From Monocercomonoides exilis PA203 (lineage: Eukaryota > Protista > Preaxostyla): 64,000 bases of DNA. The DNA lies in assembly GCA_001643675.2 (NCBI GenBank), contig LSRY02000006.1, positions 1,736,001 to 1,800,000 of the forward strand, written 5' to 3'. This document shows positions 1,846-63,369 of the stretch, in pieces. Every line of letters starts with the position of its first letter. Within the stretch, counting starts at the first letter, position 1. The notes under the pieces were generated by a model. That model worked only from the letters and a program-made list of their open reading frames with translations, was not told the origin of the DNA and made no database searches. The translations under genes were made by a program, and so were the position numbers.

Positions 1846-2100
1846 GGGTTATTATTTTTGAAATCAAATTTTTTCATTCAAATTTTTCGGTTCAAAAATT
1901 AATCTTAAATGTTAACCAATGAACAGTGATAAGTGAAAAAGCTTATTTAAGACAATTTTATCTTTGATTAGGTTAAACTTTTTGTTTTCAAAACAGTTGT
2001 GACAATTTTAGCAATTGATCACAAAATCTCTTCTAAAAAACTTTTAATCTTTGTAAAATCGACACACCGAAAAAAGATATGATTTCAAAAATAATCACCC
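1846..2100 (+). mobile_element. GGGT-TIR MITE copy A (255 bp); mismatched flanks ATAT / AACT
   Basis: Starts gggttattatttttgaaatca and ends acaccgaaaaaagatatgatttcaaaaataatcaccc. Inverted copy of B; its right end marks the palindrome boundary. Confidence 0.9.
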
Positions 2101-2313
2101 AACTATAATAATTTTTGGTGTATTTGATTGAAACAAAAGATTTAAACAAGTGGGTCAAAACAAGGAACTACAATTATTTTCATTTGTGAAATTTGAACAA
2201 TGAATAATATTTTTTTGATAACAAAATTTGATGAATGAAATAGTGAACACTTTTGTTACAAAAATATATTAATTGTGATTATTTATTAAAAATACGAACT
2301 TGAGGGTAATATA

Positions 2314-4414
2314 TGGGTGATTATTTTTGAAATCATATCTTTTTTCGGTGTGTCGATTTTACAAAGATTAAAAGTTTTTTAGAAGAGATTTTGTGATCAA
2401 TTGCTAAAATTGTCACAACTGTTTTGAAAACAAAAAGTTTAACCTAATCAAAGATAAAATTGTCTTAAATAAGCTTTTTCACTTATCACTGTTCATTGGT
2501 TAACATTTAAGATTAATTTTTGAACCGAAAAATTTGAATGAAAAAATTTGATTTCAAAAATAATAACCCATATGACTCTTCATTCAATTTCATTGAAGCA
2601 ATAGGAGCAATGGATGAATTTTTCGCATGAAAAAATTGAAATGAAATAATTTTTTAATATTTTATTGAGTATAAGAATGCAACGCTTCATCACAGCAATG
2701 ATGGCAACAAATAAATGAGTGCATACAATTGATAAAAAAAAATGGAAAGAAAGATAAAGTAATTCGAGAATTGAAGTTTTAATTCATTACACATAAAATC
2801 CTTGAAAATACATATATTTCTCTTCATGCTCTCAACCTTTTTAAATAATTAATTTAATTAAACGATCAAATCATAAACAAATCAAAATGAAAAGACAAAA
2901 AATAATTGATGTTCTTGAAAAGCTGAGAGAAACGGAAAAAAAAATGGATGGACACTAAAAGTAATAAAAGTGAACATAAATTTGATTTGTTTGATAGAAT
3001 TCTGTATTTTGCTTGAGACAATTTTTTAAAACAAAATTTCAGGATAATAACTATTATTATAATAAACGAATCAAAAACACCAAGAATATACTTTGAATAT
3101 GGATAGATATTATTTGGGCAGGTGTAAATACTGTGATGTTTTTTTTGTTATTTGTGTTCTTTAATTTCTAAAGTCATTTTTACCGTTTTATTATTTGTTC
3201 CACAAAAAGATGGATGAAAAAATAAGTTTATTTATCGAAAAGACGATTATGAAAGTGGAGTGCTTAAATGAAAATATTATTAGTGCCTGCAATGCTTTTC
3301 ATTTTTCTCATCTATTTCTTTTTTCTTTTCTTTTTTTTTTAGCAAATTGTTTATTAAATTGAAATGTTTTCTTTTTCAATTTTCTCACAAGCTCACGCAC
3401 CCACGCACACGCACGCACATGTACACGCTTTCTCTTTCTCTTGTTCTTTGAGTGCTATTGAACTCTGACAAAAATTATGTTAATACAAGACTTTGTTATG
3501 CTCACTTCTCATTTGTGTTTTGCTGTTTTTCCCCCCGCTTATTTGATGATTCAATGCGTTTGTGACGAATTTATTTTTAGCTTTCAATTTCTTTCTTTCT
3601 TTCTTTCTTTTTTAACGACAAAGTTGACTTTGAATTGAAAACACTCTGCTAACAACTTCGTTTGCTTTCTATTTGAGTTCTTCTGCTTCCGCTCGCCTCG
3701 CTGCCATTCTCCATTCCTTCCTCAAAATTAATCGCATCAGAAACGGTCAATATCGTCATCCCCTTTGGAAAGTGAGTAATGAACTCTCTCTTTAAATCCA
3801 TCAAGCTCAATCTTCCTTTTGAACAGTGCTGCACACATGACTTTGCCAGCTCTTTCATCGAACTTTCTTCAATCTTTATCATGTCTGGCCTTTCTCCTTT
3901 TTCAATCTTCTCTCCAGCTATCACAGCTTCATACTCTCCAAAGGGGATTATCAATGTCAAGCACTCCCACAGCATCATCCCGATCGAGAAAGCCACTGTC
4001 TTCTTCGTTGCATGCTTCTTTGCTCCGTTCAACAGCTCCGGAGCCATCCACCTCAGACACTCTTTCTTGAAATCGTCTTCATCTTCAAAAGCGGAAGATG
4101 GAGGTGGTGATTTGGTGAACCTCTCACTCTTCACAGAAATGTCCGAGGAAGAGGTGATGATGGTGGAAGAAGATGAAATGGATGATGAGCCTGAGTCTGT
4201 TGAGCAGTCAGAGTGCATGGCTATGGTGATCACCATATGCTCCGAGAACAGAACAATGTGAGGACTCAGATTGGCCAGTGAAGATAATCCATTTTCCATC
4301 TCATCAAAGGAGTGAAGTGCAAGATTGGCCACCCAGAACAGGATCTGGGCAGCTGTCTGCTCTCTTTGTTGAAGACTTCCAATCGCCATCTCTTTCTTCT
4401 CATTCCTCCCATGA
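2314..4414. repeat. Right arm of the large inverted repeat
   Basis: Reverse complement of 1-2101. The ORF track gives identical translations for 26..766(+) and the C-terminus of 3649..7743(-). Confidence 0.97.
2315..2569 (-). mobile_element. GGGT-TIR MITE copy B (255 bp), TSD ATAT
   Basis: ~23-bp TIRs gggtgattatttttgaaatca ... tgatttcaaaaataataaccc; ATAT at 2311-2314 and 2570-2573. Confidence 0.92.
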
Positions 4415-7400
4415 AGCAGCATGAACAGCGAATCCCTCAGATCCACAATCAATTTCTCATGAGGTGATGAGCATGCGATTGCATCCACCAGATTAGACAT
4501 AGATGAAGTGGTTGGGCACATATCCTCCCCTCGAACAAATGTGGATTCTGTATCTGAAGTGTCTGTTGTTGAAGTGGATGAGATAGAAGGTGAAGGAGAT
4601 CTCTTTCTCACCTCTTCCTCTTCCTCCTTCTCATCAACCTTCTCCAGCATCCATTTGGGAATCTTGTCTGAGTCTTGGCCAAGAATGTATTCAGTGGAGC
4701 CACTCTCAGACAGAAGATGCTCCGATGACTCCGAGTGTCCCAAGCTTTTCTCATACACCCTCTTCTTGATCCTCTCTTCATTCATCTTTTCTGCCTCCTC
4801 CTCTGCTCTCCTCCACTGCGCCTCAGGCGACATCTCCATCGTCACCATCTCAAATGCCTTCGGATCTTTTCTGATATTATCATTCACAATCACCTCCAGC
4901 TCTTCTGTCCTTCTCTTTTGCTTCCTCCATCTAATAGTGACAACAATGGATACAATTAGAACAACAAAAAACAAAATTGCAAAAACCACAATTACAATCA
5001 TTGTCCATGACGATTTCTTTTCATTGGAGCTTTGACTCATATTATCTGTGGGGCTGCTGTCATCTCTTTTTTTGCTGGCATTCTTTAGCACAATCTCCGA
5101 TGTAGAATGAAAGTTTGGTGCCTCGCCAAACATAATTGCAACAATTAGTTCTGTGTCATCTGACATGTCTCTCACTTTTGCTGCAGAAATGTCTGAACAA
5201 AGCACTGACTCATTCACAAAGCCTTCACCTTCGAATGGATACTTCTCAATCATTTCTTCATCGAATCTTGCATATATAAGCTGAAGTTGCAGATTGCAGG
5301 GAAGGAAAAGAGCTCCAACAAATGTTAATTGTGCTTTGTTTTCATCCAGCTCCATTTCTACAGAATCAAGGATTGGGATGAAAAACGGCGATAACCTCTC
5401 AGCTGCTATCCCATCCAGAGTGCACCCGTCGCTTAATACCCACAATGATGTATTGTCCCTCAGCCCATCTCCTCCTTTCAGACTCGAAACCATTAGCTCA
5501 CCCGAATCACCACAAAGGATATTGCGGCGAGCAGATGGATATCCTCTGATTGATGGGTTGTTATCTTTGAACATTCCCATCTCAACTGTCATACGTCCCC
5601 CAGATACAGACAGCCCTCCTTCACATGAATTTGAAATCACAGTGTCTTTCATTGCAACAAAACTATTTCTCGTCCAGACCAAAGATCCGTTCCACAAACA
5701 TAGTCCTTCATTCTTTTCGTTTTGTTGGTTCAATACCTCTCGGCTATCTGGGTCACTATGTTCTCCAACAAACGAGCACGTTTTTATTTCCACATTCAAA
5801 CAAAAAGCAAACAAAACAGCACTTCCAAGAGTCGAAGACAATGAGCGAGCTTTGAATGAGCAGTTCGATAAATTGATCAGTTCTTTTGAGGAAGCGGAGA
5901 TCGCACAAACGTTTGAGCCATATCTCGAAACATTTGAAAATAAACACTGAGATATATCGACAATGCATACATCCTGAGAATTTATCGAATTCTCATGTGG
6001 ATCAACGATGCTGATGCAGCTTCCATCCTGAAGAGCCACATTCTCAATTGATAATTGCTCGAATGAGATATTTGCAGTTCGCGAAAAAGCACCTATGATT
6101 GCTTTTCCAGAAGCAAATGAGAGACCGGAAACGTTGGTGCGGGAGATTGCAAGATGCTTTCCATTTTGAACAATAAGCGTCATCGACAGCTCAGGCATAG
6201 TGGAGACGGAGGGCAAGTCTGATGCACAAAATGAGCAAGACTGAATTGAAAGCGATCCGCTTTTAATGAGAATGAACGAAGAGTGTTTTGAGGAAAATGG
6301 TGACGGAAACGAGAATTTGAGGAGAGATATTGTTACACATTCTGATGTGACCACGAGCTCATTTCGTGTTGCTGGAATCTCAGAAAAAACATTCACTTTG
6401 GACGGAAGTGAACCTTTCGACAAGAGCGTCATATCACTCAGCTCGGTCTCTCCCTGCACCAGCGAACAATTGTCAACATACATCATACTCACAAATTCGT
6501 GGGACAAATGGCTTATTGCATAGTCAATTGACTTGCATGGATATGATGGCGGCCCACACTGCCTGTCATTCTTCCCTCCGTTCGATGGTAATGAGGAAAC
6601 AACAATCATGTCTGCCATATACACAGTTATCAGATTGATCAAATCAAATGGTGTCTCAGAATGCTCGCCACTATCAATGCCATATATTGCATTTTCCTTG
6701 ACATATCCCTTCTGCGATAGGACAAGCCTGAATTGTGTCTCATTGATCTGATTTTCAATGTTTATGCACTCAACAAACACATCATTCCCCACCTGTGCCA
6801 CGTTGCGTTTGAACAGCACATTATCAAAAAAGAAGTTCAGTTCTCCACTCAGCGTACTCTTTATATATGCGCCACCACCTCTTCCATTCGCAACAGAACA
6901 GCTTGTTTGAATGACCTTTGAATCATGAAGTGCAAACGATCCCTCTTCATCAAGCACAAACAGCATCCCTCCTCCTTTCTCTGACAACGTTGTGTTGCAC
7001 TGCTCAAAAACTGTTCCATTTATTGTCAGTTGCACATTGTCTCCATGTGCACTTTCAACAACACTGCATCTGTTTCCATCACCAGACACGCACAAAAATG
7101 ATCCATCCTCTACGTTTACGACTGTTGCATTATTTGCTCCTCTACCTTCGGTGCTTTCTATCATTATCAAGCATCCGTTTCTCATTTGCACTTCGGTGGC
7201 AGTGAGCCCTTTCATGGTGCAAGTACTTCCGCTCCTCAAGCGAAACACTTCTCGGCCAAGTGTCATGTGCCCCACAGTCACTATGTTCACATCAAGCTTC
7301 CCTTTCACCAACAGCACAAAGCAACAATCACATTCCTCATGCTCTTGCACATCTGCTTCAAACAAGCAATCTGAAAGCATCAGTATTCCAGCTTCATTAA

Positions 7401-10400
7401 CAACTATTGCACTCGAACCTCCTCCATTTATTTTTCTCAATGACAAAACAACAAGGCCAAAAAACATCTCCCCATAATTCTTTATATGGGGAGTTGCCTC
7501 TCCTCCCTCTTTGCCTTCAATTCGGATTGTCGCTTTTACCTTTTCGTCTGCCTCCCATGCCGATGAATTTATGCTACACCCGGAAAGATCAAACATATCT
7601 TCAAGCACACATTCATCATTTATTAAGATTCCACATTGTGTCATCGAATGATTAATATGTTTTGTTGCCATCCACAGAGACTGGCATGGATATTCTTTGC
7701 TTCCGCACGATACAATATCGATTCCATTGCCAGAGACACACACAATATCAGATGAAAAGTTTATTAAAAATCTCAGAAGATTGATTTCTCCCAGTTTTGG
7801 ATCTGCACCATCGAAGAGGTCACTGTCATTTTTCCCGATTCATATTCAAATGCAAAAGAAACAGTCGAAATTGTGTGGTTAAGATCGCTCGAATAAATAT
7901 ACATATTCTTTCCATGGCCAGCTTTGTTTTTTGTAAATACTACAGAACTAAAAGAGTACGTTGTTGTTGGTTCTTCGAAGCAAGCATAAAGGCCTCCTCC
8001 TTTCCCGCTTTCTTCATTCACGCTGGATTCATTAAATGTGCAACTTGAAAAGAAGAATGAACTCCTTTCGCCAATCGTTATGGCACAGCTTCCGCCTTTG
8101 CTTTCTTCCTCAGCACAGCTTGTCTGCTCAAAAAAACATCTCTCTGCATTGATAAACTTTCCAGCTCCAATTGTTGCCTGCACTGCTCCTCCACCTCCTT
8201 CCATCCTCTTCAAATTCTTAAACGAGCTGTTCAACAATGTTAATTTCGATTCCAAATGAATCACGCCGCAACAATCAAAGTTCATGTTGCAAAACATGCT
8301 GTTGTTTATCAATCCTGTTCCACTAGCCCCCATAGATATCATCCCATTTGCGCTGCTTGTCCCTCCTCCGGCAATTTTCAACCCATCAACAGTCATTGCT
8401 CCATCTCCCTCAAATTCAATCATTCCCGCCCCCTTGAACATTACTGATTGAGAATTCTCCACCTCAAAATTCGTGATGTTCAAAGTTCCTCCGCATATTC
8501 GAAGAAGCGAGTACTCAACAAAAGTTGTGAGTTCATTCATTTTCATTGAGCACCCAACAAGAGTTAGAGCGCTTCCGTCACATTCAAAGAATGTGGTTCT
8601 TCCGCTTAGAGACGCGTTCAATGCAAATGTCATCTTTGTCATGCTGACTGTTGTGTTACTCCTTGCCAGCCAATCATGAACTTTCTCATCTCGGCATCCA
8701 ACTGCAATGTCTTCTCCGCTTCCATTCACATCAATGTTGAAAATGTGTTCTTTGAACTCCATTTCGTGTTCAAACTCAAATGTGCTCATAAACCTCAATG
8801 TCTGCTCCGGATTATCAATATTTCTCTGAACACCTCCATCAATTGTTTTGCAGGGGAAGTCTTCATATCCACATTTTGCATGATCATGATGGCTCGCTCC
8901 GCCAATATACACAACAGACGGCGGATCCCGCAAATACAACACAAGAGGGATTGCCAAGCTGTCGTTGAATGTTGATCTTTCATAACCACGAAGCTCAACC
9001 AGGCTGTTCAAGTCATATTCAAATCCAAATGATGCTGTGGATATCACAACTGACAAATCATTCCCATTCACAAAAACACAATCTCCAGCTTTGGCTTTGC
9101 ATCCTCTAAAGAATACATCTTTCAGGCAAAAGTTCTGAAAATCGTTGCTCAAATAAAGAAAAATACCTCCCCCAAGACCGTTTTCCCCTTCATCGTCGCT
9201 CATAGCCTCACATGAATCCATTCCAACTGTGTCTTTGTCTCCTGCCCCATTTCCAGCACTGAATTCTGAATTGTCTTCCATCACAACACTTAACCCTCCG
9301 CCATTTCCACCCCTGCACGAACACTCATCAACGCTCATATTCCCCAAATGCAGCTTCTCTTCATTCTTGAGAGACACCTCAAATATGCATCCATTCCCTT
9401 CAACGCGAATGATATTGTTAAACATAACATTGGCAAGCGTTAAACTATCTGGATTTCCAAACGAAAAAACTGCAGCTGCTATTCGAAAAGAGAAAAGCAT
9501 CACATCTCTGATAACTGCTTTGCCTCCAGCAACATTGATAACCGATTCCGTAAATGTGTTCAGTTGATTCTCTTCAGCCGAAATGCTGCAATCACACACC
9601 AACACCGATCCTGATGCAACCAGAACAAATGAGGAGGAAGCGTCTGATAATGAGGAATTGTGAATCAACTTGAACTTTCTGATGGTCAATGCTCCGTCGT
9701 TCTCCACTGTTATTGCAGATCCAAAATCTGGAGATGCTGACACTGTCACAGTCGTGTTGTCCTTCGATGCTCCTTCAATTTCTATCATCTTCTCAACAGA
9801 AATGGCAGTCTCATTGTAGATGCCTGCATCCACTGTCACTTGTGTTTCTGCACCAGCCAAATCACTTGCCACAATAATGCTCTGCTTCAGCGAACGGCAT
9901 TTTCGTTCTGCGGGGCCACACATTACAGTATCATTTCCGGCATCTGCAGACACATGCACTGGATTGAATGCTGAACTGAGCCACTCACTTTTGTCTTCAT
10001 CATTCCATGTCAACTGAGGCCTCGATGTTGTGTGTGTCAGGCAGCACACAAAATCCTTCTGTGTGATGATGGAAGCCCAATCACCAGACACAAAAACATC
10101 ATGCCCTTTATTGAATGCTGCTGTGTTCGATTCAAAATATAGATATTTGAAAGAGAAAAAATTCTCATATGTTAAAATGGAGTTTTTGGCTCCCACGCAA
10201 ATACCGCCACCGTTACTGTGTGACGTACATTCCAATATATAACAATCTGATATCAGAATATCTAACTCACATCTAATTCCAATTCCTCCTCCAAAACAAC
10301 ACTGTGATTCATTATTCGTTGATGTGTTATTCTTGAAAAAGCATTGTTGCACAACAACATGATTTGAGTCACGTGAATAGAAACCGCTTCCTAAATTGGG

Positions 10401-11540
10401 AACAGAATTATTATAAAAAGCACAGTTAATTACACACTTTTCTGATACTTTGCTTGTCACTATTCCCACAGTTCCACAATCTTCAGAACAGCAATTCGAA
10501 AAAACAGAAGAATTAATTGTTCCACTTCCGGAAGGAAAAAGAGAAATTGCTGAATGTCCGTAATTTTTAGTGGTTGAGCATCGTTCGAATTCACAGTTTG
10601 TCACTGTCAATTCACCACTCGAAGCAAATCTCAATGCACCACCATAATCTGAATCGTATGAAACGTCACGGAAAATAGTGTCAATGAAATTGGAATCCCC
10701 ACTTCCGGTGATTATCTGGCGGATGTTTGTGATGTTTTTTGGTGTTGATGACAAAAAAGAGCAGTTTGAGCAAAAGAAGCACAATGACTGCACAGAGTTT
10801 ATATCAGTGAAGAGTGACCCATAAAATGGTTCGTCTGTCGATACAAATGTGGAGCTTCTGATGCTTGTGTCACATTTTCGATAAGAGTTTTTGAGATCAT
10901 CCGCATGCTTTATTGAGCAGGATATGTTTGAAAAATGACAGTCCACAATGTTCACTTCAACAAATGAAATTGGCGACAGAAGAGGTTCGAAAGATGTGGT
11001 AATCAAAGAATCGAATGAAGACACTGAAATGTCCAAAATTCCTTTGGTTAATGGTGCGCAGCTTGTCAGTGGCTCAAAAATGGCAAAGGAATGACTCAGC
11101 AAGCTGGCTGTTGCAAGCGACAAATTCTCAAGCTTAACAACTCCTCCTTTCGTTTGCATAAAGTTTTTTGAAGAACATTCACATGGAGCAATCGTGCAAG
11201 CGTGCAGTGATATCAGTGAATTCTCGTCACTTGATAACACGTTGCATTTTTGGATCTGCTGAAAGAGAATGTTGCAGGATTCAAAAGAAGAATTCAGTAA
11301 ATGAAATGAGGCCAAGTTGCAGCTCACCAGACCGGAAAAATGTCTTGTTTCACTGTAATGTGCATGACATGCTTTCGCTTCCAAACGACCATTCTTTTCG
11401 ATTTGATATGTTCGGTTTGTGGATTTATTTCCAAAGTGAAATGCTGTTGACTGAAATTCTTCCGCACAGTTACCGATCAATTGCGAAGGTGCTTGAATAA
11501 ACAATAATACACACAAAGAAAATAATAAGTCATTCATCAT
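3649..11540 (-). CDS. Large type-I membrane receptor-like protein (~2,630 aa): signal peptide, Pmp/pectin-lyase-like beta-helix ectodomain, one TM helix, TKL-like pseudokinase; one frameshift near 7830-7836
   Basis: ORFs 7773..11540 and 3649..7743 join by a -1 shift (SFAFEYESGK/NDSDLFDGADPKLGEINLLRFLINFSSDIVCVSGNG). Repeated GG[A/G][I/L]..F..N and CG....PC.[S/T][I/L] motifs; TM WTMIVIVVFAILFFVVLIVSIVVTI followed by RWRKQKRR; kinase C-lobe motifs without HRD or DFG. Confidence 0.85.
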
Positions 11541-12049
11541 GAAAAATATTTATTGATCAAACCTCATCCTTTCATAATCCAAAATATTTTATTGGGATGA
11601 TATTTTATGTTTTATTTGTTTTGTTTTTTTAATGAAATAATTGAATTAATTTCTTTTTTCAATTCCAAATCTAAAAAATTTTTGTTAATATATCAAACAA
11701 ATGATTTCATAAAACAGAAAAGAAGGAAACATACGTGGTTTTCAAAAATTAAAATATATTGCCCTTATTCTAATTTTTAATAAAATTCTTCAATCTTTTT
11801 TGGTATATGAAATTTTGATTTTTTTTTTTTTGAAATTAGAAGAAATAATTTGTGAAATGAAGCGAAAATGCCAATAATAATGAATAGAAAGCTATTATTA
11901 AAAATTCATTTTGAATTTATGAAAAATTTCATTCAATTACTGGATAAAATAAGCTTTGTTATGAGTAATAAAGTGAAAATTCTGATCATCTCCGGGCAAT
12001 TGCGGAATATTGCCATCATTCATTAATATTGTTATTCCACAGGACAGTT

Positions 12050-15957: not shown

Positions 15958-16643
15958 GTTCTGCATGGAATTCTGACATTATAACAACAATTCATTTTTA
16001 AATCTGCTTCCTCCTTCATTCTGCTTGTTTTTATAACATTTTATCTCTTTTGTGCATTTTGCTAATCTGGCTGTGTGTCAAGAGCTACAACCGCATTTTT
16101 CGCTTTTCTTGTTATTTGCTCTAATCTTCCAAAAAATTCAAATCTATCTCTCTTTCTCTCACTTCTTGTTCCTTTTAAAAGTTTTCTTGAATATTTGATG
16201 AAATAGCTTGTATTTTTGGATATTTTTTGACTTTTTGTGTTTGTTGTGAATTATTCTCCTTGTCGAATTGTTATTATGTTTTCTTATTTGTTTTGTTTTG
16301 TTTTTCTTTGCTTGTTTCATATCACTTATTTCAATTGTTTTAACTATAGAATTTTTTATCATTTTAAGTTCTTGCAATTGGAAAAAAGTAAAAAAGAGAA
16401 CGACTCAACTTTATTAATGACTTCTTTGTTTTGAAAAGTTCAACTGAAACGATGAAGTTGTTGAATAAAAATAAATTCACGTTATTTTATCGTGAAATTC
16501 TAGAAATGGCTATTCACAAACTCAAATCAAAATTAACAAGCTATCATCATCGAAAACTATAAATCATAAAGTTTAAAGGAATTACAATTGAAAGAGGAAA
16601 AAACTTGATTTATCGCAAAAAGATTAGAAAAAACATTAAAATT

Positions 16644-24954: not shown

Positions 24955-25041
24955 GTTATTTCGGATAAGTTTTCAAGAGTAGTCACTATGTGATCTGAAA
25001 ACCATCATCACAAGCAAAGGGAACACTGTTTATCATTTTCT

Positions 25042-43774: not shown

Positions 43775-43806
<32 letters not shown>

Positions 43807-48490: not shown

Positions 48491-48746
48491 GGGTAATTAT
48501 TTTTGAAATCATAACTTTTTTCGGGGTGTTTGTAATTCTAAAATTTTGTTTCTTGGAAAAGGAATTATTCTTTTGAAGGGGAAAAAAGACATAATAATTG
48601 TTTGAAAAAACGATATTCGAGAACGTATTTAAAAAAACAATCTTTTGAGCAGCTATAACTTTGTAGTATCGTTTAATCTGCATTTTAAGTGAAGACTCAG
48701 ACTGAAATTTTTGATAGAAAAAATATGAATTCAAAAATAATTACCC
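48491..48746 (-). mobile_element. GGGT-TIR MITE copy C (256 bp), TSD AATT
   Basis: gggtaattatttttgaaatcataacttttttcggggtgt ... tatgaattcaaaaataattaccc; AATT at 48487-48490 and 48747-48750. Confidence 0.92.
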
Positions 48747-49309
48747 AATTTTGCTTTTTCGATTTTTATCTTATTATTAAGTCGATTATACATTTTTCTT
48801 TCGTGCCTAAAGCACAGAAAGCCTTTCATATGTGGATGATCAAAATTTTGAAGTATTTTTATCCTCAGAATTACTCTTTAGCGCAAATAAAATTTCTACG
48901 ATCCCATCAGTTTATTTTCTCTAGTCTAAATAAACAGATTTATATTCCAGCACGCTCAAACCATCATCAACAGTTCTATCTTCCTTCTATTTACAGCTCC
49001 GACACTTTTTTCTCTGCCTTTGACACCTCCTTTCTTCGCCAAACAAGCTCTTCACCAAATGCTTCTAGATGTCTAAATTTTTTTGTAAAGTTCCTTTTGT
49101 TTAATTTTCAAATAAAGAAAAAATATCAAATTTTCATCAAATTTCGGTTTTCGCTCACCAAACTTCACTAAATTGGAAATAATAACATTGTCAATATTTT
49201 ATTGTCATGATATCGAAATTTGATGAGTGGGAACAGAAATTTGATCAAAATAAGAAATCTTTATTTAATTTGAAAATTAAACAAAAGGAACTTTTCAAAA
49301 TAATTTAGA

Positions 49310-50814
49310 CAGATGCTCGAAGGATCAGAAAATAAAAGAGAAGCGCCAGGAAGATTGCTTCATTCGTACAGAAAAAACATCGCTTTGAATGGTGCGAATG
49401 GAATAATTCAGATGGCGGATTTTCATCTGGTGGTGCACTTTATGTTGTTTGTTCCAATGCAAATCTCACAATCATTTCTTGTTCGTTTTTCAATTGCAAT
49501 TGTCCAGGAAGTGATTGTGGTGGAGGAGCATTGTTCTGCGGAAATTTATGGAAATTTGATATCACAAAATCAAATTTCACAAATTGTTCTGCTTAACATG
49601 GAGGAGCGAATTGTTTATCTACTCCACAATCATCTTCAGTTTGGAAGTTCTCAGAAAACAGAGTTGAAAGCTGTTCAATAACAAACTGGTGTGGAACTGG
49701 TTGGTGCTTTTCACTCTATTACATGCCCTCAGATGCTCAATTCCTTTTTATCAAATGAAAGTGCATCTCAAATTCTGGTGGTGATTCTGCTGGTTCTCTC
49801 ACTTTTCAAAATCCACCAAGCAATAAGCCAAGTCAATTTTTGGTCGATAATTGTCAATTTATAAATAACAAATTGACATCAACTTCAACTTCCTATGGAT
49901 GTGCCGCAATGTGTTTTTATCCTCCTTTTCCCTGGATGAATAATATGAGATTCATCACTTTTTGTTTCTTTGATGGCAACACCGCAACTAATGGCAGAGG
50001 AAACGATGTGGTTTTCAATGGCAGCAGCATCACTCAATCACCTTTCCAGCAATGCAGCTTAACAACCCCAACACAAAGAGTATGGAATCAAGGAACAGCT
50101 GATAGCGATGTGTACAATGGCTGGCTCCCCCTCATCGCCCAGAACAAAATCGTTTCTAACAGCGGAACTGATGCTGATACCTGTGGCAGACCCCAACAGA
50201 CACCATGTGCTACCATCGAGTATGCTCTCAGTGGTTTTGCCCTCCCCCAAGATGCCTCCCTCATCCTCCTCAAATCCACCTTTGCACACATCCAGACACT
50301 CACGTTCGTTTCTCCTTACACAAAAATCACCGAAAATTGCACAGATGCCACAACCATTGCCTCCAGTGGCATTCCCCAACCATCAAACTCATATTCACAC
50401 TCATCACAAACAACATCATCATTTTCTTCATTTTCATCCTCATCAACAATTTCTTCACCAGATCCATCTGCCTCGTCTGCCCTCTTCCAACAGACCCAGG
50501 GCTCCCTCACAGTCTCTGCCCTCGCCCTCGCCCACAACTCCACAAATCAAATCACCCCCATCTTCTTCCACCTCTCCGATAACTCCCCTTCCCTCAACCT
50601 CAACACAACCACCATCACTGGAACAATCCCATCTTCATCATCAATCACCACACCCCTCTTCTTCCTCACTGCTGGCTCCCTTTCCCTCACCAACTGCACC
50701 ATTACCAACATCAATTCACCACAGCTACACCAACAAACAACGAATCGTTTTGCAAGCAACAAATTGATTTTCAATGTGTTTTACCAGAATGACTCTGTTT
50801 TAATTTTAACTTAA
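49310..50814 (+). pseudogene. Truncated pseudogene of a Pmp-like beta-helix surface protein
   Basis: One frame reads FEWCEWN..SGGALYV..CGGGALFC..CSA*HGGA..FIK*KC.. and runs into ORF 49840..50814 (GNDVVF, CGRPQQTPCATIEYAL). In-frame stops at 49594 and 49756; no TM or C-terminal domain. Start approximate. Confidence 0.7.
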
Positions 50815-51998: not shown

Positions 51999-52254
51999 GG
52001 GTAATTATTTTTGAAATCATATTTTATCTAACAAAAATATCGGTTCGAAAATTACACTCGAATATATGTAAATGAACCCTGAAAAATTATTGATCAATTT
52101 TTTTGACTTATAGACAATTTTTCCATTTCAAACTTAGGCTTTTGAAACGATTAATAAACATTTAATTTCGAAATGAAAATTATAAAGATAATAACAATGT
52201 ATTTTCATAATAAAAACACTCCGAAAAAAGTTATGATTTCGAAAATAATCACCC
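51999..52254 (+). mobile_element. GGGT-TIR MITE copy D (256 bp), TSD AGAT
   Basis: gggtaattatttttgaaatcata ... acactccgaaaaaagttatgatttcgaaaataatcaccc; AGAT at 51995-51998 and 52255-52258. The host reading frame continues across the empty site. Confidence 0.93.
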
Positions 52255-52994
52255 AGATTTTCAAATCATATCATCGTCATCAAGAAAGAGACAGAAAAGG
52301 AGTTACCAACCTGATTTTGAATCGTTATGAAAGAAAAGAGATACACAAATTTCCAGTTTAGAAGAGCAAACTTTATGTTCAGATGAAAGTGAAGATGAAG
52401 AAGAACATTACGGATTATTGTTTGATGGATTTCTAAAAGAAAAAGAGGATGAACATATTAGAATATGGGTGATATTTTTTGATATCATTAAAAATTACGA
52501 AGTTTGATCTTAAATTTTTTTCATAATGGGTGGGGTGGCAAAAATTTTTTTATTTGAAATTACAAGAATATATATATATATATTTTTTACAGAAACAACC
52601 TCGAATAAATTATATGTTTTTTTGGTTTATTCGTTCAAAATCAAATGTGAAATTTTTTTTTAACAATAATGTTGAAACATTTTATTATTCTATTTATAAA
52701 CTATTGGAAAACCACTCGAGATAATTTATTCTTTTTAAATTTTGAAGATTTAAAAAAGTGAAAAAAAATTATTCATTTTCAAAACTTTTATTAAAAAAAT
52801 TGAAAAAATTTCTCTCAACATAAGCAGAAAAACAATATAATATTTCACAAAATAATGTCGGAATGTTAAATTTTTGTGCAAATAACGATGGATAAATAAT
52901 CATCTCATAACACTTAAGTCAGACAATTTAATGTTATATAAAATAATTATGGATATGATCATAAGGAAAAAATATTTTTTAGGTATCCCACGAG

Positions 52995-53089
52995 GGTCAC
53001 ACCTTGGGTGGCATTTTTTTTGCACAAATCGATTTGTTGTTATGAGGGTGTGTGAAATATATCAAAAAAAGGGGTACCAAGGTGTGACC
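52995..53089. repeat. Short inverted repeat/hairpin with 13-bp perfect arms
   Basis: ggtcacaccttgg (52995-53007) and ccaaggtgtgacc (53077-53089), extendable inward by T-run/A-run pairing. Confidence 0.75.
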
Positions 53090-53599
53090 TCTTTTTCGAA
53101 AAATGTATCTCAAATTTTCAGATCAAAAATCTGTGAAAAATTTTCGCTTTTTTGTTCTTTCAAGAACGAGAAAATGCTTATATTCTATTAGTGTTCATAC
53201 GCTTCATAATTATTAAAACAACAATATTCATTAAAAATGATTAAAAAAAATGTGTGTTTTGCACTCTTTTCAAAGAGAAAAAATTCCATAACTTTATTTC
53301 AAAATGTTCTTTCAACAATTTTTCTCCACATTGACGTTGCATCGAGGCTTGTTTTTTGTTATTTTATGATAAAAACGCATGTTTTAAAACAAATCTTTCT
53401 TCTAGATAATCAATATGTGTTCTTTCTTTGTTTTAATTGAAAATATTTGTATGATGGCTGTGGAAACGAAGCTGTTTGGCAAAAAACAGTTGAAGGGCAG
53501 TTTGGTCTTTATTAATTTTTCTTTATATGAATATCTGCTTATTAACATTTTTTGTGTTTCTTTCAGGGCAATAGTCGGAAAAGAATGAAAATAAATAAA

Positions 53600-56500
53600 A
53601 GCTTTATATCTCATTGTGCAGGGTGGCTATGGAATTGGGAGAGCGAATTCATACGAAAAGTGTCCAGGATGAAGGGATTGGGAAGGGAATTGGAGATGAT
53701 ATTTTCAGACGAGAAACAAGGATATTTTTCAATGAGAAAGATGAAATTGAAGAAAATACATAAGTTTCACATTTTTCAGAAGAAACAGAAATCGATGGAT
53801 TTAATAGAAAAATGACTTCTGGAAAGGACGATTAGCGAATCAGATGATGAAATATTTGAAAACGAAAGGAATTATGAATTTTTATTGGAGGGAAACAGAT
53901 GCCAACGGAATAAAATATTGAAATTGCCTATAAAAATGTTTAGAAGGTTTGCTGTTGTTATTTTTTTTTTTTTTTTGAAGTGATTATTGTTATTTTTTTA
54001 TTCAGGATGTTGAAAGAATTCGAAATTAGGCGGTTTTGAAGAAGAAAAGTGGGGAAGAACAAATAAAGACGAGCAGACGAAATTCAAGAAATTTCGAAGA
54101 TGTCTGGAATTGGGCTTTGGCAAAGAATTAGTTTTTGAGAAAAGACGATTTTTTGTGAAAGAAGAGGAATTGAAAGCTTAAGAGATGGAATGAAAAAGAG
54201 GAAAAAGGAATTGTCGCATGTTTCTTATTAGCATTAACGATAGAAAGAAGATTAAGAAGAATTAATGATGAATTTGGTGAACACTATAACAAGAAGAACA
54301 TGAAAAATGGAAGAAAAATATTAGAAATAACGTTTCATTGAATTTCTCCATTGAAAATAATTTGCATTCATCTTTAAAATCTTCGATCTTCAATAACCTC
54401 ATAAATGCACTTCTCCTTTTTCTTCAAATGAGACAAATCCATATCTCAGATCTTCTTCTTCTTCCTTATTTTCCTCTTCCTCTTCCTCCTCAACAAAAGC
54501 AAACACTGTCTCCAGAGAAAACACATCTTCTAAGGCACTGATTGTGATGAAGACTGAACTGGAGATAAGCTTCGATTCGACTTTTCGTTTTTCCACCGAA
54601 TGTTTCGTGAGCGGTGCGGTTGTTGGAGTGTTTGAGGAAAACGTGGCAGTGAGGAAGCACAGCATCTTTCCGAACATGCCGCAGAGAGGAGAGGCTGCAG
54701 GGAAGATGATGAAGAACGCAAGAGAGAGAGAGAGAGATTATGAGAAATATGATGGGAGAGGGAGAAGAGGAAGAAGAGGAAGAAGAAGAAGAAGATGATG
54801 ATGAATATGAAGATTATACAAGAGAAGAAGGAGAAACGAGTGATTCCGAAGAAAAAAGGCACAAACACAACAGAAATGCCAAACAGAAGAGACAGAAAGA
54901 AATGAATGATGAGCTGAGCAAGCTGCGGAAGGAAGAATTTGACTGTGGAGAATCGAACTATTTTAGAGAGCAGGTGATCAAAGAAGCAATTGAAGACAGG
55001 CCTGATGCGATGTTTGGGAACAAAATACAGAAAAGAAGGCGAAGCAAAAAGAACACAAACGGAATTCGTCACGAATGCAGACACAGATCCAAGAAATCAT
55101 CGGAATACATCATCATCTTCTTCTTCTTTTTCTTTACACAGCAATTCTCTCCATCGATCTGCTTATTCGGACTCCTTCTATGAAGCGAGTGAAGATGAAA
55201 AAGATGAAGAAAACAACGAAGCAAACGACTTTACAGATGACTCAGATTATCCATAACATGCAAGGCAATCAGCAGAACGAGATGTTCGAATGGATTTTGG
55301 CTGAATCTGCATCTTCCGAGCGAATCAAGTGCGACATTCGCTGATGATGCAGACAAGTGAGTTCACAATAGGCAACTTTGTAGTGTGTGCACCGTCGATT
55401 CGATATGGGCCGCACGGAGAGGAGGAAGAGGAAGAGGAAGAGAATGAGAAGGAAAAGGAGAAGGAGTAGAAAGGAGAGAAAAAGAAGGGAAACAAAGGAA
55501 AAACTGAAAAAGGACTGACTTTTCGAAATTCGAAGGGTACGCAACGGATAAAAATGCAAAAAGAACAGAGAGTGCATTTTTATCACAAAACATACAACAA
55601 AAGATAAACGTCATCATCATCATCACTTGCAAGTTTCGATAAATCTAACACAAATAAATGCGAAGAATCTTCTTCTTCGTATTTTTATTCTTCATCCAGC
55701 CAAGTGATCTATACTGCTTGTTCTCCACACACATATTTCACCACAAATGACTGGGCGCATCTTCTCTCTTCATTCAGCAACCATCCCAAACGATTCTATC
55801 AAGCATAAACATTTTTGGAAGAGCTGTTTCTTCGATAAGGAGAATACATCAACAATTAATGGAAGAGATTCTGAAGAAATGTTATCAGATAAAAGCAGTG
55901 AAGAAGATGAGAAAGAAGAATTCAAGTCACCTGAGAAGCCTAAGATTCATTCACATAAGTCTCAAAATTCAGGTTTTTCTTCTTTTCCTCCTCCTCATTA
56001 TGGAGGCCATCGTCTTCGTCTGATCAACCGACTTGAGTATGTGATGAGTGTGCGGACGCTGCATCTGGTTGAGCGGTAAAACTTAACGCGTTTTGTGCAC
56101 TGGTTAAAAGAGCTGGTGAGATGTGAACTTGTGGAGAATAACTTTGAGCAGGCAGGTGTGGAGCATGAGAAGGAGAATGCAGCGTGGAGGAATAGAACGC
56201 GCTTTGAAGAAGGAGATTCAGAAGAAGAAGAAGAAGAAGAGAAAGAAGAGAAAGAGGAGAAGAAGAAAAAGGAAGAAGGAATTGCTTCTACAACTTCTTC
56301 TTCTTCTTCTTCTTCTGGTAACAGCAAGATTGATCAAGCGACTCTATCAGAAGAATTCAGCAACTTACAGCCAATACAGGGCTGGTGAGTGAATATTCTT
56401 CAGAAGATACCTTTCAATCAAAAGAACTTCAAAAGAAGAAAGAGCGAATATGATGAAAACAATGCTTACATAAATTTAATTGCTTCAACCATTGATCAGT

Positions 56501-58800
56501 CAAGACACCTCAAATTCCCGTTTTCTGGCTCCGTCCTGAAGCATCTTCTGCTCACCCACTGGTTCACCAACTTCCATCAAATCAATCCAGTTTTTATTCT
56601 TGTTGTTCCTTGCCTAACTCTTCCCTCTATCTCTGATATCTTCCATCCATTATCCATCAAAGACGACTCAGAAAACAAACAGTATTCTTTCACTGTGCAA
56701 TACCGCATCATATATCTGAAGAATGCAGAATCGATTATGCCTATCAGACTGGGGCTGGAGAAGATGCTGTGTGCTATTAACACACTCCTGCATGTTGTCT
56801 TTCACAACGCATGTGACAACAACAAAAACAAAAACAGCGAAAAATACAAAAGCCAATCTAATTCGATTTCAACTTCTTTTTCTTCATTCTCTTTCCCTCT
56901 CTCTTCTTCTTCTTTTTCTTCTTCTTCTTCCACATCCCATTCCATTATATCATCATCTCTGATGCATTATCCAATTTGTATTGTAAATTTCGACTGAATT
57001 TGAAGCAATGCGTTGTTTTACGTTCAGATCTTCCCATTTGCTGTTCAATCGATCAAATGAAGAACAGATGAATTTGCAGATGAAGATGAAGGATCAAGAA
57101 TTTACTCCGAGTTAAGGGAGAGAAATAGAAAGAGAAGGAGAAATGAATGAAGAAAATGAGGAAAAGAAATATGATTTAATGTAAGAAGAAAGAAACGCCA
57201 TGTATGATGATTCCGATGATTACGAGAACACTAAACGAACAATCAGGAAAAATCGCACCAAATATGATAAAAAAAGAAGAAGCAGAAGCATACATTACGT
57301 CAACAACAGCATTTTTTAAACGGCAATACAATTTTCTATAAAAATTCTAGAAGTTATTATTAACCGCGAGTTTTGTTGGCATCTGCTAGGGCTGTTTATT
57401 ATTCGTTCGCTCCTCCACCTGCACCGTTATTGCAAGCTGAAAATAGGTGCAACTGCAGAAAATATAAAGGAAAATATTTCATTTCTTTTTGAGAACAGAA
57501 AGAAAAACAGCTTAAAAGAAGATAAAGCGAGACGAATGAAAGACGGAAACAAATGACTGTAACGGAGACATTTTCGTTTGATTAATACATTAAGTGACAA
57601 AAAAGGTAACTTTGTGCAAATTTCCATTAACTCATTTGTTTTCTTCTGCTATTCTCAACTGCATCTTCGTATTCATTCACAGGCACAGAATAAACAGCAA
57701 TCTACTTATTCTTCTTCTTCTTCTCTTTCCTCTGCTTTTCCACTTGGTTTGCTTTCTTCCCATTCTGCATGTCTTCATCTACACAGAAGTTGGGCTGGCT
57801 ATCAGATGAAGAGTTCTATTGAGCCAGAGACAAAAGGGAAAGATGAACCTTATTTTTTAATAATCACAAGAATTCTGATTCATTTTGTTGAGTGCTCAGA
57901 TCGAAAGGGACAGAAAGAGGAGAAAATGAAGAGGTGAAATGATGATTTGGAAGATGAAGGAGGTCTAGGAAATGAGGGAGATTGAGGTAAATTGCCATCA
58001 ATGCAGATGAAAGGAGGTTATAAAAGAAATTTAGAAAAGAAATTAACAAAGAACTTGAAAAAGTCAGAAAAGGAAACGAAGAAGAAGAGAGTGAAAGTGA
58101 AAGAGAAGGAAGAAGATGCTGAGAACAATACCCAAACACGAAAACCTCAGAATCTTTAGAAGGATCATTGGATGACCAAATTTATTCGTCAAAATCTGAA
58201 CAATTTGAAGGAGCGGCTGCTGAAAGAACGGAGCAGCAAAAATTTTGTCTTCTTTTATATCATCTTCATTCTAATCGTCATCACGGCCAGTTGATTGTGA
58301 GGCAACTGAATGTTGCTATATCCAAATATCTTGCTCTTTTGCTTCCTCTTCTTCGGATGTGGAGAAAGAAGCAGCAGATGAAACATGTTCAAATGTAACT
58401 TCGATCACTTTCATTACAAAACCTCCTTTGACTGCCACCAATCTTCTTCCTCTTCTTCTTCGTCGTCGTCCTCCTCTTCCTCCTCTTCTGTTTCTTCTTC
58501 TTCATATTCTTCATAATCTTCTTCTTCTTCCTCTTCTTCCTCTTCTTCTTCCTCTTCTTCTTCCTCCTCCTTTACCTCCTCTTCTTCTTCTTGTATTTCA
58601 TCTTCTTTGTGTGCATAAACATCATATATCTCCACTTTTTCATTATCATCTCTCACTTCATTTGATTGGATTTCTTCTTTTTTTTTCCTCATCCTTATAT
58701 GGGATGATTACAGAAAGAAAGAAGAAGGGTATTTCTGAAGAAAAAAAACAGTTAAAAATGAGAAGAAGATTGAAAAGTCAATGAAGAGAATAAAGATAAA
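53600..58800 (+). pseudogene. Decayed coding-like cargo: acidic/Ser-rich gene fragments of unknown family
   Basis: Raised GC and codon-like GAA/TCT tracts. Short protein-like ORFs (55747..56079, 56095..56388, 56389..56997) are broken by frequent stops. Boundaries approximate. Confidence 0.45.
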
Positions 58801-60049
58801 GAGATAGAAAATTTCGTTTAGACAGGATATGATGAATGGAAATTGGTAAGTGAAAATTGCTGAGATTTCAAAAAATGAGGAAGTTAAATGGAAATGGGGA
58901 GAAGTTGGAGGAGAAGAAGATGATGAACCAGAACAGGAAACAATGTGGCAGGAAGGAATACGTTGAATATCTGAATCATTCTATCTGTTGCTTCTTTTTC
59001 ATGAGCGTTATGGAGCACAGATACGAAGAATGTGGAAGTGCGCTGAGATATGATACTGTTGAGAGAACATTAGCGGTTGAGAAGCCACAAGGAGGTGCGG
59101 GAGAGCATGCCATCACCTCTCCAGGGAAAGGTAATAATGAGAGAACAGCGAGAAGGAGGTGATGTTTTTGCAAGCGGATTAATTATTAGGGAAGACGGGG
59201 CTATTGGTGAACTTACAGCAGTTGATACAAGCAAGTGTTTCTGCGGAGACTATGTTCGGCTGTTCTTCTTTTGTAATGAATCAGAAAGGCTCTTCATTCA
59301 CAGACACTCTCTTATGAATCAGATGCAGTGTCCAATGGATACTTGTGGCAGCTGCAGAGCGAATCCATATATTGAGCATGTCTCGAGTACAGCTATAGAT
59401 CAATGGATAAACGCGACTGCGCTCCCAAAGAATGTAGAAGTTCTTTTGGAGAAAGGTGCAGTTTGAGATACACTGGAGACATGCTGCTGTTTCATTCGTA
59501 TATGTTGTTGATAAGGTTTCCAATCAAGATGGTAGTTAAGACGGAGTGCATCAAGCTGAAGTGACTTTCTGATATTTTAATTCCAAAAAGATAAATAAGA
59601 ACAATTATACCGCTTTCAATTGCGATATACGTTGAGATAAGATGCTGTGCTGAACTATAGGATTCACCATAAAAAGCGAATTCGATTGAAGCAGCATTTT
59701 GTGTAGAGATGTTGATGTTGGAGAGAAAGACGCAGGAATTGGGAAGAGCACGAAGATCGGATTGGAAGAGGCTCAGATATCTTCTTCAAGCACAAAGAAG
59801 TATGTGGTTGAGGTGAAGATGCTTATCGGAAGGAGAAAGGAGAGAGGAGGACACAGCAAGAGATACGACGAGGAAGGAGAAGAGGGAAGAGCGAGCGAAG
59901 GAGTATGAATAATGGGAAAAGATGTGATAGCAAATGAGGATGCAGCTTGTGAGATATTACATCAGCGAGTTGGCGAAGGATAAATGAGCAGGAACAAGAC
60001 ATTAAGAGACAGATATGATTCGAATGTTGGAAATACAAAATAAACTTTT

Positions 60050-60600
60050 GATACGGAGGACATCTGCGGAGGTGGGGCTCAGGGGGCAAGCGGGGAGCCG
60101 CAATGATGCGCAGAGGAGCCGATGTCTTGATTGACAAATATCTGGTAATCCCAATAGAATGTGATGAAGGTGACTTTGTTGAAATCGAGATCGGGGTTGG
60201 GGTCTGTGTGGGAGAAGTCAAACTCGCAGATTGACGTGTTTCAAGCGAAAGAATGCTGAGTGAAGCCGAAGGAAAAGAGGGACTAGTTGATTTGGGCAGG
60301 AATGGAGGAGCATCGGAGAAAGAGTTCCTTTCCCATGAATACATTATTCAAGACGAAGCAGAAGTTGAGGATGCATTCGGACAAGTGCAGCTACGACTTC
60401 TCGCAGTTGAGGAACACCATTGCAACTCCGCCCTCAGAAAACTCTTCGCTCACATAGCTGGTGAACACATATGCCTCAGAAGCGCAGTCAAAGGCACATC
60501 ACCTTTCCAAATTAACACAAGAGCTGCTCAGTTGGATAAGCGCACAATGTTTGTATTATTGGAGGAGTGAAAAACGATTATTGTTCTTTGATCTGGGGCA
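60050..60600 (-). pseudogene. Decayed internal fragment of the beta-helix receptor family; probably extends ~59000-60950
   Basis: A minus frame reads EGGVAMVFLNCEKS*..LNFCFVLNNVFMGKELFLRCSSIPAQIN*SLFSF..NTSICEFD..FITFYWDYQIFVN..HCGSPLAP*. This is collinear with GRGGGAYIKS..LNFFF..VGNDVFVECINIENQINETQF..ENAIYGID..LITVYMADMIVVS..QCGPPSYPC of the 3649-11540 gene. Confidence 0.7.
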
Positions 60601-63112
60601 GACAAGCCAGCCAGAGAAGCGGAGCCGTCCAGAGCAGATGGGCAGATAGCCACGAGGGAATTGCAAGGGAGCCAAGAGGTAGAGACTGAGAGGAATTAAA
60701 GTTTTGATGAAGTGGATGCAGAAACGGATATGATAATGATGAAGAGGCGAGGGAGTAGTTTTCGAGAGACGTACGCTCTTCTGCTACATCAACCATTGCA
60801 TTCGCTAAGCTTTTTTGTTAAGCCCGTATGGAAAAGGAGCGTCGCGAAAAAAGGAGAGGAGCATCGGGTGTGGATATCTGGATGATGGATAAGAGACGAG
60901 GGAGAAATATGGAGAGTCAACGGAGAAACGAAGGGAGGAAAATAAGATGAAGATGTTCGTGCGATAGAAGCTTTTTTAGTGTTAAAATCCAAAATTGACA
61001 AATTTCTATTCAATTTTTATAATTTTCTTTGTTATTTTTCTATTTCTTTGTTTGATCAATTTATAAGAATTACTAATTTAAAGAATTTTTTGTTTCTAAA
61101 CAAAAACAAACAGCAAACTGTTGTATATCTGATAAATATCTTGTTTAACTAAAATCTTTTTCGATGTTAATTTTTGAAAATTGTTCATTTTCAATAAATG
61201 TTTTAAGATCTTCAATATCAATTTGAAGTTTACTTTGCAATAACATCATAAAACTAATTTTTTATAAGAAATTGATAAATTGCATAATGTTAGAATTATT
61301 ATTTGTTATACAAACCAGTGAACTTTTGTTTTTTTCTGTTAATCATATTTTCGAGATTTTTTGAAAAATTTTTAATGTATTTTCAAAATTTTAAATAAAA
61401 ACAATTGGAAAGAAATTAAAATCAACAAATAATTAATGATGATAATATATTGAACTATATTTTAGCAAATTGAAACAAAAATATGTTCTATTCAACCCCA
61501 CCCTTAATGAAAAAATATTTTGATCAAACTTCGTTAATTTTTATGAAATCAAAAAAAATCACCCATATCAAAAGAAACAGTCATCGAATAGGGAAATTTG
61601 ATTTCATCTCACATAAGCACAGTTTCGAAAAGAGGGCAAAAGAAAATTCTTTCCATTCACGATCAATTGGTTGTTTCTTAGAATGGTTATCAAGCAAAAC
61701 AACTATTAAAGGCATCGCAGGTTTTCTTGGATTATCGGAAACAATGGCCAGCAACAGCATTCGAGAGATCAGGCCATATTTGCTTAAAGTGTTGGACGAG
61801 ATTTTCAAAAATCCGCCCAGACCTCCAAAGTTCATTTCCGAAGAATTTCCATCTGTTGCCTAACTTGTTGATGCCACCACAATCAGATGCTCAGTTCCAG
61901 TTGGAGACTTTGATGATGCAAGGCAATTGTTTGATGGACACCACTACGCTTACAGCATGAAAATAGAAGTTGCAGTATCAGCCTGGCCTCCATTCAAAGA
62001 GTTGTTTGTTTCGGAATCAGTTCCTGGAGGTGTTCATGACGTTACCCTTTTCAAAAGTGGCAAGCATAGGTATGTTGAATACCTAAAAAAAAAAAAGAAG
62101 AAGAAGAAAAGCTAGGAAATTCAGTGCACAATCAAAATGGAAGTTGGCCAATAATGGCTGATAAGGGGCATCAAGGCCATTTCATTGATATCAACGTAAT
62201 AACTCCCATCAAAAGAATTCATAAAGCAAACAAAACTTTGAATGAAAAAGAATTCAAACGTTCAGAATCTGAATCGGTTTATTCTCTCTCTTCAACACAG
62301 CTTTCTTCTTTCTCTTCTCCTCAACCTCCTTCACTCTCTTCTCAACCTTCATTTATGTCTTTATTTGTTTCTCCATTATTATCTTTTCCTTCTGCTTCTT
62401 CATCTTTATCAATCTCTCCTCCAGCAGACAATTTTTTCATCGTTCCTGCATCAGTTGCAACTTCTTCAACTCAATCAGAAATGTTATTCACAAAACCAGG
62501 GATGAGCGTTATGACTGCTTAAGAAGTGGAAATTTTCAATAAGAAAGTTGCAAAACACAGAATTCCTGTAGAGTGGTTTTTCTGTCGAATGAAAAGATTA
62601 TGGCTCCGAATGTCAGAAAAATACACAGGTCCACGAGAAGATTTTGCAGCTGATGCAAAGATCGCATGCTAGCTCACGAACATTGTGATCGATAACAACT
62701 CTTTAGAAGCAGATGATGTAATTTTTTTTTGAAAAGTTTCAGAATTTTCAAATAGTAAAGAAACGGAAAGAAAATAGATTCAAGAAATAAATGCAAGGGC
62801 AAGAATGGAAAGAAAAATGATAAGGAAAGCCTCCAAATAATATGAGTTTGAATATTTTTCGACATATATCTGAAGATCAAATGTTAAAAGAGGAATGATT
62901 GTAATTTTTTTATAATAAATATTTTTTGCAAGTAATTTTTAACATTATTTTTTTCATTAACGATGAAAAGTTTTTGAAAGTAAAAAATTGCATGCTTTTG
63001 TGCAAATATTTTCATTCAATATTAAAAATAAATCTATTCTTTTTTAAAATTTTGATGATCGTTTCGATCTCGATATATCTTTGAATATATATAATTTTTT
63101 TATTTGAAACAT

Positions 63113-63369
63113 GGGTAATTATTTTTGAAATCATATTTTTTCATTCGAAAAATTAGGTGCATAAATATTTCTTGAATATCAAATAAAATTTTTTTTAAAA
63201 TGAAAGAGCTTATTGAATGCATTTTAATTATTGATTAGGAAAAACCATTTGTTTTTAAAAACAATTATCAAGCTTTTTCTCTTTTTAATTAATATCTTCT
63301 TTGAAAAAACTAACAATTTTCGAAAAATCAACACCCCGAAAAAAGGAACGATTTCAAAAATAATCACCA
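63113..63369 (+). mobile_element. GGGT-TIR MITE copy E (257 bp), TSD ACAT, terminal C mutated to A
   Basis: gggtaattatttttgaaatcata ... acaccccgaaaaaaggaacgatttcaaaaataatcacca; ACAT at 63109-63112 and 63370-63373. Interior aligns by eye with copy A (ttttttcattc, agcttatt, ttgattagg). Confidence 0.9.

Follow-up and report, generated by a model that had tools for sequence, protein, structure and literature searches.

Repeats in the window

This study concerns a family of short repeats in a 64,000-nucleotide (nt) stretch of the genome of Monocercomonoides exilis PA203 (GenBank assembly GCA_001643675.2, contig LSRY02000006.1, positions 1,736,001 to 1,800,000), referred to here as the window. In the working numbering used below the contig is C58 and the window C58:1736001-1800000, and L-numbers denote genomic stretches that were fetched for analysis. 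An earlier note on the window had described five MITEs (miniature inverted-repeat transposable elements), here called A to E, of 255, 255, 256, 256 and 257 bp. Their coordinates, lengths and ends were confirmed by matching to a 21-nt terminal inverted repeat (TIR) pattern, which occurs 12 times in the window against 0.02 times expected by chance. Ten of these matches pair up to give the five MITEs and the other two are the termini of a much longer element (Table 1). Both MITE ends consist of an inverted repeat of about 30 bp starting with GGGT. Farther in the two ends differ, and one of them carries the additional motif CCGAAAAAAG, which was found in every window copy as the note had proposed.

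The target-site duplications (TSDs) of copies B to E were also as described, each being four bp long and of the form A-N-N-T. All five copies are present, but only four of them represent independent insertions, since A and B share one palindrome and are a single insertion that has been doubled.

Table 1. Location of the repeats, genes and related loci discussed in the text. Positions without a prefix are those of the window.
Feature	Location	Strand	Details
MITE copy A	1846..2100	+	255 bp; palindromic duplicate of copy B; flanks ATAT (outer) and AACT (inner)
MITE copy B	2315..2569	-	255 bp; TSD ATAT on either side; original insertion
MITE copy C	48491..48746	-	256 bp; TSD AATT; against a B-like consensus, interior 47% and ends 9% different
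MITE copy D	51999..52254	+	256 bp; TSD AGAT; within the Harbinger-type transposase gene
MITE copy E	63113..63369	+	257 bp; TSD ACAT; mutated right terminus (ACCA)
Decayed 240-bp palindromic MITE	49071..49310	.	70-73% identity to its family; TSD AGAT; mutated termini; exactly 240 bp
Non-autonomous element, putatively Sola2-type	52467..61564	+	9,098 bp; 74-nt TIRs; TSD ATAT; without transposase
PIF/Harbinger-type transposase gene	51400-51998, 52255-52466, 61565-62900		Split by copy D and the 9.1-kb element
Inverted duplication, part within the window	1..11558	.	Arm 1 from upstream of the window to 2100; spacer 2101-2314; arm 2 2315-11558
Full-size relative	C8:106406-120856		14,451 bp; TSD ATAT/ATAT; intact transposase open reading frame of 1,018 amino acids
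USP-fusion open reading frame	L040:1077-4301 (C58:1877576-1880800)		1,074 amino acids; adjoins one relative of the 9.1-kb element
Third MITE family	L003:255-539, L004:2840-3126, L010:2870-3165, L018:1737-2018, L036:2841-3130, others		
Palindromic repeats of about 400 bp	L015:1100-1498, L019:2192-2595, L023:2329-2733, L038:728-1091		

Copy number and target sites

The TIR pattern was searched against the M. exilis assembly (101 contigs, 82,301,135 bp). At a tolerance of two mismatches it gave 1,407 forward and 1,407 reverse matches, compared with 1 and 0 for a control pattern, and the family comprises about 1,400 copies.

TSDs were scored in two samples, one of 45 copies from the fetched loci and one of 55 copies picked solely by exact 16-bp cores at both ends. 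In the first sample the 4-bp flanks were identical in 32 copies and one base off in a further nine, against 1/45 in a shifted control, while duplications of 3 bp or 5 bp fitted none of the 45. In the second, end-ascertained sample a perfect 4-bp TSD was present in 43 copies (78%), of which 28 were ATAT and none was TTAA. At the outer positions of the target, 41-45 of 45 copies have A and T; at the inner positions T and A are seen in about 73%. The enrichment for A-N-N-T was therefore borne out genome-wide, with targets biased towards ATAT. Empty sites were also recovered, in that uninterrupted paralogues of the gene that hosts copy D carry a single AGAT or GGAT at the corresponding position, and a single ATTT at the position of the 9.1-kb element. 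The TSD counts and the empty sites support the proposal that this is a family of mobile MITEs making 4-bp A-N-N-T duplications. The repeats are short and non-coding, bear TIRs and TSDs, occur in high copy number and have ends in common with a transposase-encoding element, the features by which a MITE is known.

The gene surrounding copy D (51.4-62.9 kb of the window) is itself a transposase gene of the PIF/Harbinger type, for which an intact paralogue (L120:1075-3003) encodes 642 amino acids with a DDE_Tnp_4 match (E 2.6e-16). Its position could suggest that the MITEs belong to, or are moved by, another superfamily, whether PIF/Harbinger, piggyBac or Kolobok (the last two with 4-bp TTAA targets) or an undescribed lineage. 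The gene is, however, the target of the insertions and not their source, since its uninterrupted paralogues, L120 included, have single copies of the duplicated sites. The 3-bp TWA duplication expected of PIF/Harbinger, a superfamily that the earlier note had already doubted on this ground, fits none of the 45 copies scored, none of the 43 perfect TSDs is TTAA, and a Sola2 transposase was found inside an element that bears the MITE's own ends (see below). An origin in another superfamily is accordingly regarded as very improbable.

Two TIRs separated by 2.9 kb on contig 6 were considered as the ends of a possible longer element and rejected, as they belong to two separate MITEs. At another locus (L013, C35:495580-498833) four 256-bp copies lie inside 2.2 kb, and MITE insertions appear to cluster locally.

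Full-size relatives and their transposases

The earlier note had suggested looking for long copies with the same TIRs around an intact transposase, and such an element was found. When another, diverged Sola2 transposase was used as the query, several families were listed, and two of the hits are situated 4.2 kb downstream from exact TIRs of the MITE type. The one analysed is a 14.45-kb element on contig C8 (Table 1), whose TIRs agree with that of the MITE at 21/21 and 20/21 positions. Over the first 36 bp its left end agrees with the motif-bearing MITE end at 34 positions (alignment score 85; 59 for the other MITE end), and its right end matches the other MITE end over 37/45 bp (score 69 against 50). 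As each end of the full-size element corresponds to one end of the MITE, the 'extra motif' can be read as the sub-terminal sequence of one full-size Sola2 end. The 1,018-residue product is homologous to PPL_04538 of Heterostelium album (formerly Polysphondylium pallidum) with E 3e-22, the similarity running through DFKEN, CD.G.HF and HGK.ECD. The 14.45-kb family, with its identical 21-bp ends, is the best candidate for the source of the transposase that would move the MITE.

A second candidate is a family of 17-23-kb elements with a ubiquitin-specific protease (USP) domain in the transposase open reading frame (ORF). In the 1,074-residue ORF listed in Table 1 a UCH domain (E 2.4e-14) precedes a region with RTD.C..C, FDFKE, CDSGPHNRN and HHGKNICD. 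This catalytic-type region has at least 90 copies in the genome at 86-100% identity, most with open frames of more than 1,050 amino acids, and these copies sit in the 17-23-kb elements, whose TIR matches that of the MITE at 20/22 positions. Nine elements of 12-24 kb with that TIR were collected, seven of them holding a transposase match, and a perfect 4-bp TSD was seen in eight of the nine (ATAT six times, ATTT and AATT once each).

A word-based protein search returned M. exilis proteins only, and the dictyostelid Sola2 protein was reached by an exhaustive profile search with the catalytic region, which gave 651 relatives including PPL_04538. Between the USP-fusion ORF and PPL_04538 the BLASTP E value is 8e-24, through all three D-containing motifs, and that of a whole-library phmmer search is 7e-16. 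Compared by eye, PPL_04538 and the published transposase of Sola2_PPa-1 have long sequence stretches in common. DUF7869, a candidate domain, was unconfirmed by Pfam scans. A USP-containing ORF in the window (42406-45798) was also considered as a transposase and set aside, as it resembles the C-terminal half of an ordinary USP gene.

No recognisable transposase was detected in the 9.1-kb element of the window, which has at least ten relatives at 80-92% identity and is a deletion derivative of the 17-23-kb autonomous USP-transposase family. It also holds fragments of glutamate-rich ORFs.

Superfamily assignment

The Sola superfamily was reportedly defined by Bao et al. in 2009. In dictyostelids, Sola2 elements have 4-bp AT-rich TSDs (AWWT, ATAT, AAAT or ATTT) and TIRs of 12-22 bp that begin with G and end with C; examples are DFa-1, DFa-2 and DFa-3 of Dictyostelium fasciculatum and PPa-1, PPa-4 and PPa-5 of Polysphondylium pallidum (Bao & Jurka, 2013, PMC3627910). 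The M. exilis elements resemble them in having a homologous DDD-type transposase with three D-containing motifs, a 4-bp TSD with an AT-rich AWWT preference, short TIRs, and large elements in the 10-15 kb range with extra genes. The termini, GGGT...ACCC against the G-initial and C-final ends of the dictyostelid families, may agree in this general form. The M. exilis elements differ in the exact termini, in their oxymonad (Metamonada) host, in the USP domain of one family's transposase ORF, and in that the amplified form is a 256-bp MITE of about 1,400 copies. From transposase homology and target sites the family is predicted to be Sola2-type. The distinct lineage suggested by the earlier note is not supported, given that Sola2-type TSDs go together with a Sola2-homologous transposase in an element with the same ends, and the exclusion of Sola that it called for is impossible if the family is itself Sola2-type.

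MITEs have been placed in Sola2 in insects too (iMITEdb, PMC5199201). These are likewise miniature and non-coding, and the likeness is one of description; they were classified by TSD and TIR features alone, whereas a transposase-bearing relative with matching ends is added here. No literature linking Monocercomonoides with Sola elements or MITEs was found in the limited literature library consulted.

Divergence of the interiors

The interiors of copies C and D had been thought barely to align with the others. Pairwise comparison showed instead that the interiors of the window copies are collinear homologues, although diverged, with 59-66% identity (z = 2-10 over shuffles), and all sampled copies fit one 255-bp consensus with gaps of 0-4% per column. 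Within the end-ascertained sample two interiors differ on average by 0.41 (0.68 when sequences are shuffled), and the copies fall into 23 clusters at 30% difference. Conservation of CCGAAAAAAG across the family is 0.82-0.93 compared with about 0.72 for the interior, and in the end-ascertained sample the positions just outside the ascertainment pattern reach 0.89-0.93 against the same interior value. Beyond the pairing of the TIRs, neither a conserved structure nor covariation was detected in the copies with RNAalifold, and the consensus is without coding signal.

Because 78% of the TSDs are intact, decay after insertion should amount to a few per cent, and most of the interior divergence would therefore predate the last move of each copy. 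This pattern should be the expectation for cut-and-paste elements in long-term steady state.

Length near 256 bp

A length census was made of elements with exact 16-bp cores at both ends (n = 176). It comprised 164 elements of 253-259 bp, ten of 260-268 bp and two of 247 and 252 bp, so that the fixed length described from the window holds genome-wide. Among these 164, the first 50 average 255.96 bp, with a standard deviation (SD) of 1.22 bp. The outliers are of 247, 252, 260 (five), 262 (two), 263 (two) and 268 bp; they show no 10.5-bp periodicity and no peaks one helical turn from the mode, the distribution having a single mode and monotonic tails. Length differences rise with divergence. As the elements are rich in A/T runs and the assembly is from nanopore reads (Illumina-polished), some of the 1-bp length differences may be errors.

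Neutral drift in length was simulated, each copy receiving 53 substitutions. With 0.02 indels per substitution the SD is 2.08 bp and 90% of copies lie within 3 bp, against an observed SD of 2.08 bp and 93%, whereas at 0.05 just 75% lie within 3 bp. In multiple alignments the MITE itself has 0.033-0.044 indels per substitution. The data thus lie at the tight end of neutrality and are compatible with no selection or with mild selection on length.

The earlier note had gone further and proposed that mobility depends on the spacing between the ends, and a stabilising selection for about 256 bp has to be weighed in this light. On very short substrates the transposase complex would work best at this length, through looping, helical phase or nucleosome geometry, and lineages of changed length would stop spreading, leaving the interior sequence free to vary and the length not. 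In support of it, 93% of intact-core copies are of 253-259 bp despite the 0.41 interior difference, more than the 75% predicted by a mid-range genome indel rate of 0.05, and in two copies whose ends are decayed, several larger indels have removed 12-16 bp. There are also precedents. Internal eliminated sequences of Paramecium, mostly shorter than 150 bp, have sizes with a 10-bp periodicity, and IS50 and IS1 transposition is length-dependent at short inter-end distances (PMC3464196), both of them cases in which loop geometry may limit the size of short mobile DNA; excision of a Stowaway MITE likewise falls with size. The Paramecium sizes are periodic, however, unlike the single-mode length in M. 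exilis.

Several observations speak against such selection. The spread seen is the one that the neutral model predicts at 0.02, a rate inside the measured 0.02-0.065, and the gap openings per mismatch found by BLAST in the MITE (0.08-0.09) are no fewer than those of other repeats at the same loci (0.02-0.065). One subfamily ranges from 256 to 262 bp, and side peaks at a helical turn are absent. A separate family, of which eight copies were found, all of 240 bp, shares the first 19 nt of its TIR with the 256-bp MITE, its interior being unrelated (z about -1); it differs in length by 16 bp, or about 1.5 helical turns. The copy of that family in the window is dead, 27-30% diverged and with mutated termini, yet still exactly 240 bp. 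Since the same ends bound elements of 240 bp, about 256 bp and 14.45 kb, and the neutral model fits, a dependence of mobility on end-to-end spacing is not supported, and selection on length is considered unlikely. If it were nevertheless true, the family would have recorded in nature the physical limits within which a eukaryotic transpososome works. Common descent offers the simpler account, in which the length would stay near 256 bp because all copies go back to one progenitor and indels have been few and mostly of 1-2 bp.

Inverted duplications

Copies A and B occupy opposite arms of a palindrome with a 214-bp spacer. The window edge alone gives arms of 2,106 nt, and comparison of the window with the upstream 10 kb by BLAST extends them to about 9.24 kb at 99.87% identity, the upstream part being L031:2859-10000; walking outward, a 1-bp indel between the arms is met at 2,656 bp. 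At each of its inner ends the palindrome has the MITE terminus that bears the motif. The TSD is lacking on the inner side of copy A, where AACT stands instead of ATAT, although AACT fits the A-N-N-T target pattern, and no clear TSD was seen when the outer junction was checked. The palindrome could be the product of an aberrant one-ended transposition, of fold-back repair or of an assembly artefact. It also doubles two long ORFs (3649-7743 and 7773-11540).

Two further inverted duplications with MITE copies, 99.8-99.9% identical, were found at L032 (C71:104000-111000) and L035 (C58:1152000-1161000), and the former has its centre of symmetry inside a MITE-like copy of 244 bp that has decayed. 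It may be that large palindromes are frequent in this assembly.

These structures, together with the derivation of the assembly from nanopore reads, raise the question of whether the repeats as a whole are segmental duplications or long-read assembly errors and not mobile elements. Hundreds of copies nevertheless lie in unrelated surroundings and are each bordered by a separate 4-bp duplication, paralogous empty sites exist, and the family has many diverged subfamilies. This explanation, to which we give the smallest probability of all, is refuted for the family and remains only for the A/B palindrome.

Other repeat families

A third MITE family of about 264-271 bp has the ends GGGGAAAATAT...ATATTTTCCCC and A-N-N-T flanks (ATAT, AATT). 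A family of palindromic repeats of about 400 bp was also observed, with ends like CAGATATCGC, which are not of the GGG...CCC kind.

Proposed origin and maintenance of the family

The five repeats very likely belong to a non-autonomous, non-coding Sola2 family of about 1,400 MITEs, which would be moved in trans and would owe its uniform length to common descent. In the proposed mechanism, the MITEs would be moved in trans, and may be so at present, by DDD transposases of the Sola2 kind whose genes lie in large elements of this genome. Integration would take place through 4-bp staggered cuts at A-W-W-T, with ATAT preferred, the cut bases being duplicated afterwards. Under cut and paste, each move would create a new TSD, and the interior would retain all the mutations of its lineage. 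Only about 35 bp at each end would be kept constant, because copies losing them stop moving.

A number of points weigh against this reading or narrow it. Mobility is read from sequence signatures, and about 100 of the roughly 1,400 copies were read individually, the census being otherwise one of pattern counts. Formally, the arrangement A-N-N-T|GGG...CCC|A-N-N-T also admits a reading in which the TSD is of 2 bp and each end is longer by one base. The 14.45-kb element was studied as a single copy, and its match to the MITE fades some 45-60 bp in, which indicates common ancestry of the ends but not a simple internal deletion. Several diverged Sola2 transposase families coexist in the genome, each a possible mover of the MITE. 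Finally, the choice of Sola2 over Sola1 or Sola3 draws on a single pairwise homology together with the TSD pattern.

In the Stowaway/Mariner-like and mPing/Pong systems a MITE also shares little beyond its ends with the supplier of its transposase, and trans-mobilisation has been shown experimentally. The M. exilis family resembles them in the conservation of the ends only; it differs in superfamily, their TSDs being TA and TAA/TTA, and in that trans-mobilisation is a prediction here.

Nothing established is overturned by these results, and the idea of a required spacing is unnecessary for the data. About 35% of the M. exilis assembly has been reported as unclassified repeats (M. exilis Oxford Nanopore Technologies assembly paper). 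The present analysis would place in Sola2, a superfamily that has received little study, both a family of about 1,400 copies and its relatives, which measure 240 bp, about 268 bp, 9 kb, 14 kb and 17-23 kb. The family presents a clean case of a MITE with about 35 bp conserved at each end and a drifting interior, and its pairing with a candidate transposase source with an intact ORF makes a transposition assay feasible. It is a real and abundant family, putatively of Sola2 type and with a full-size relative, in an organism whose repeats are largely unclassified.

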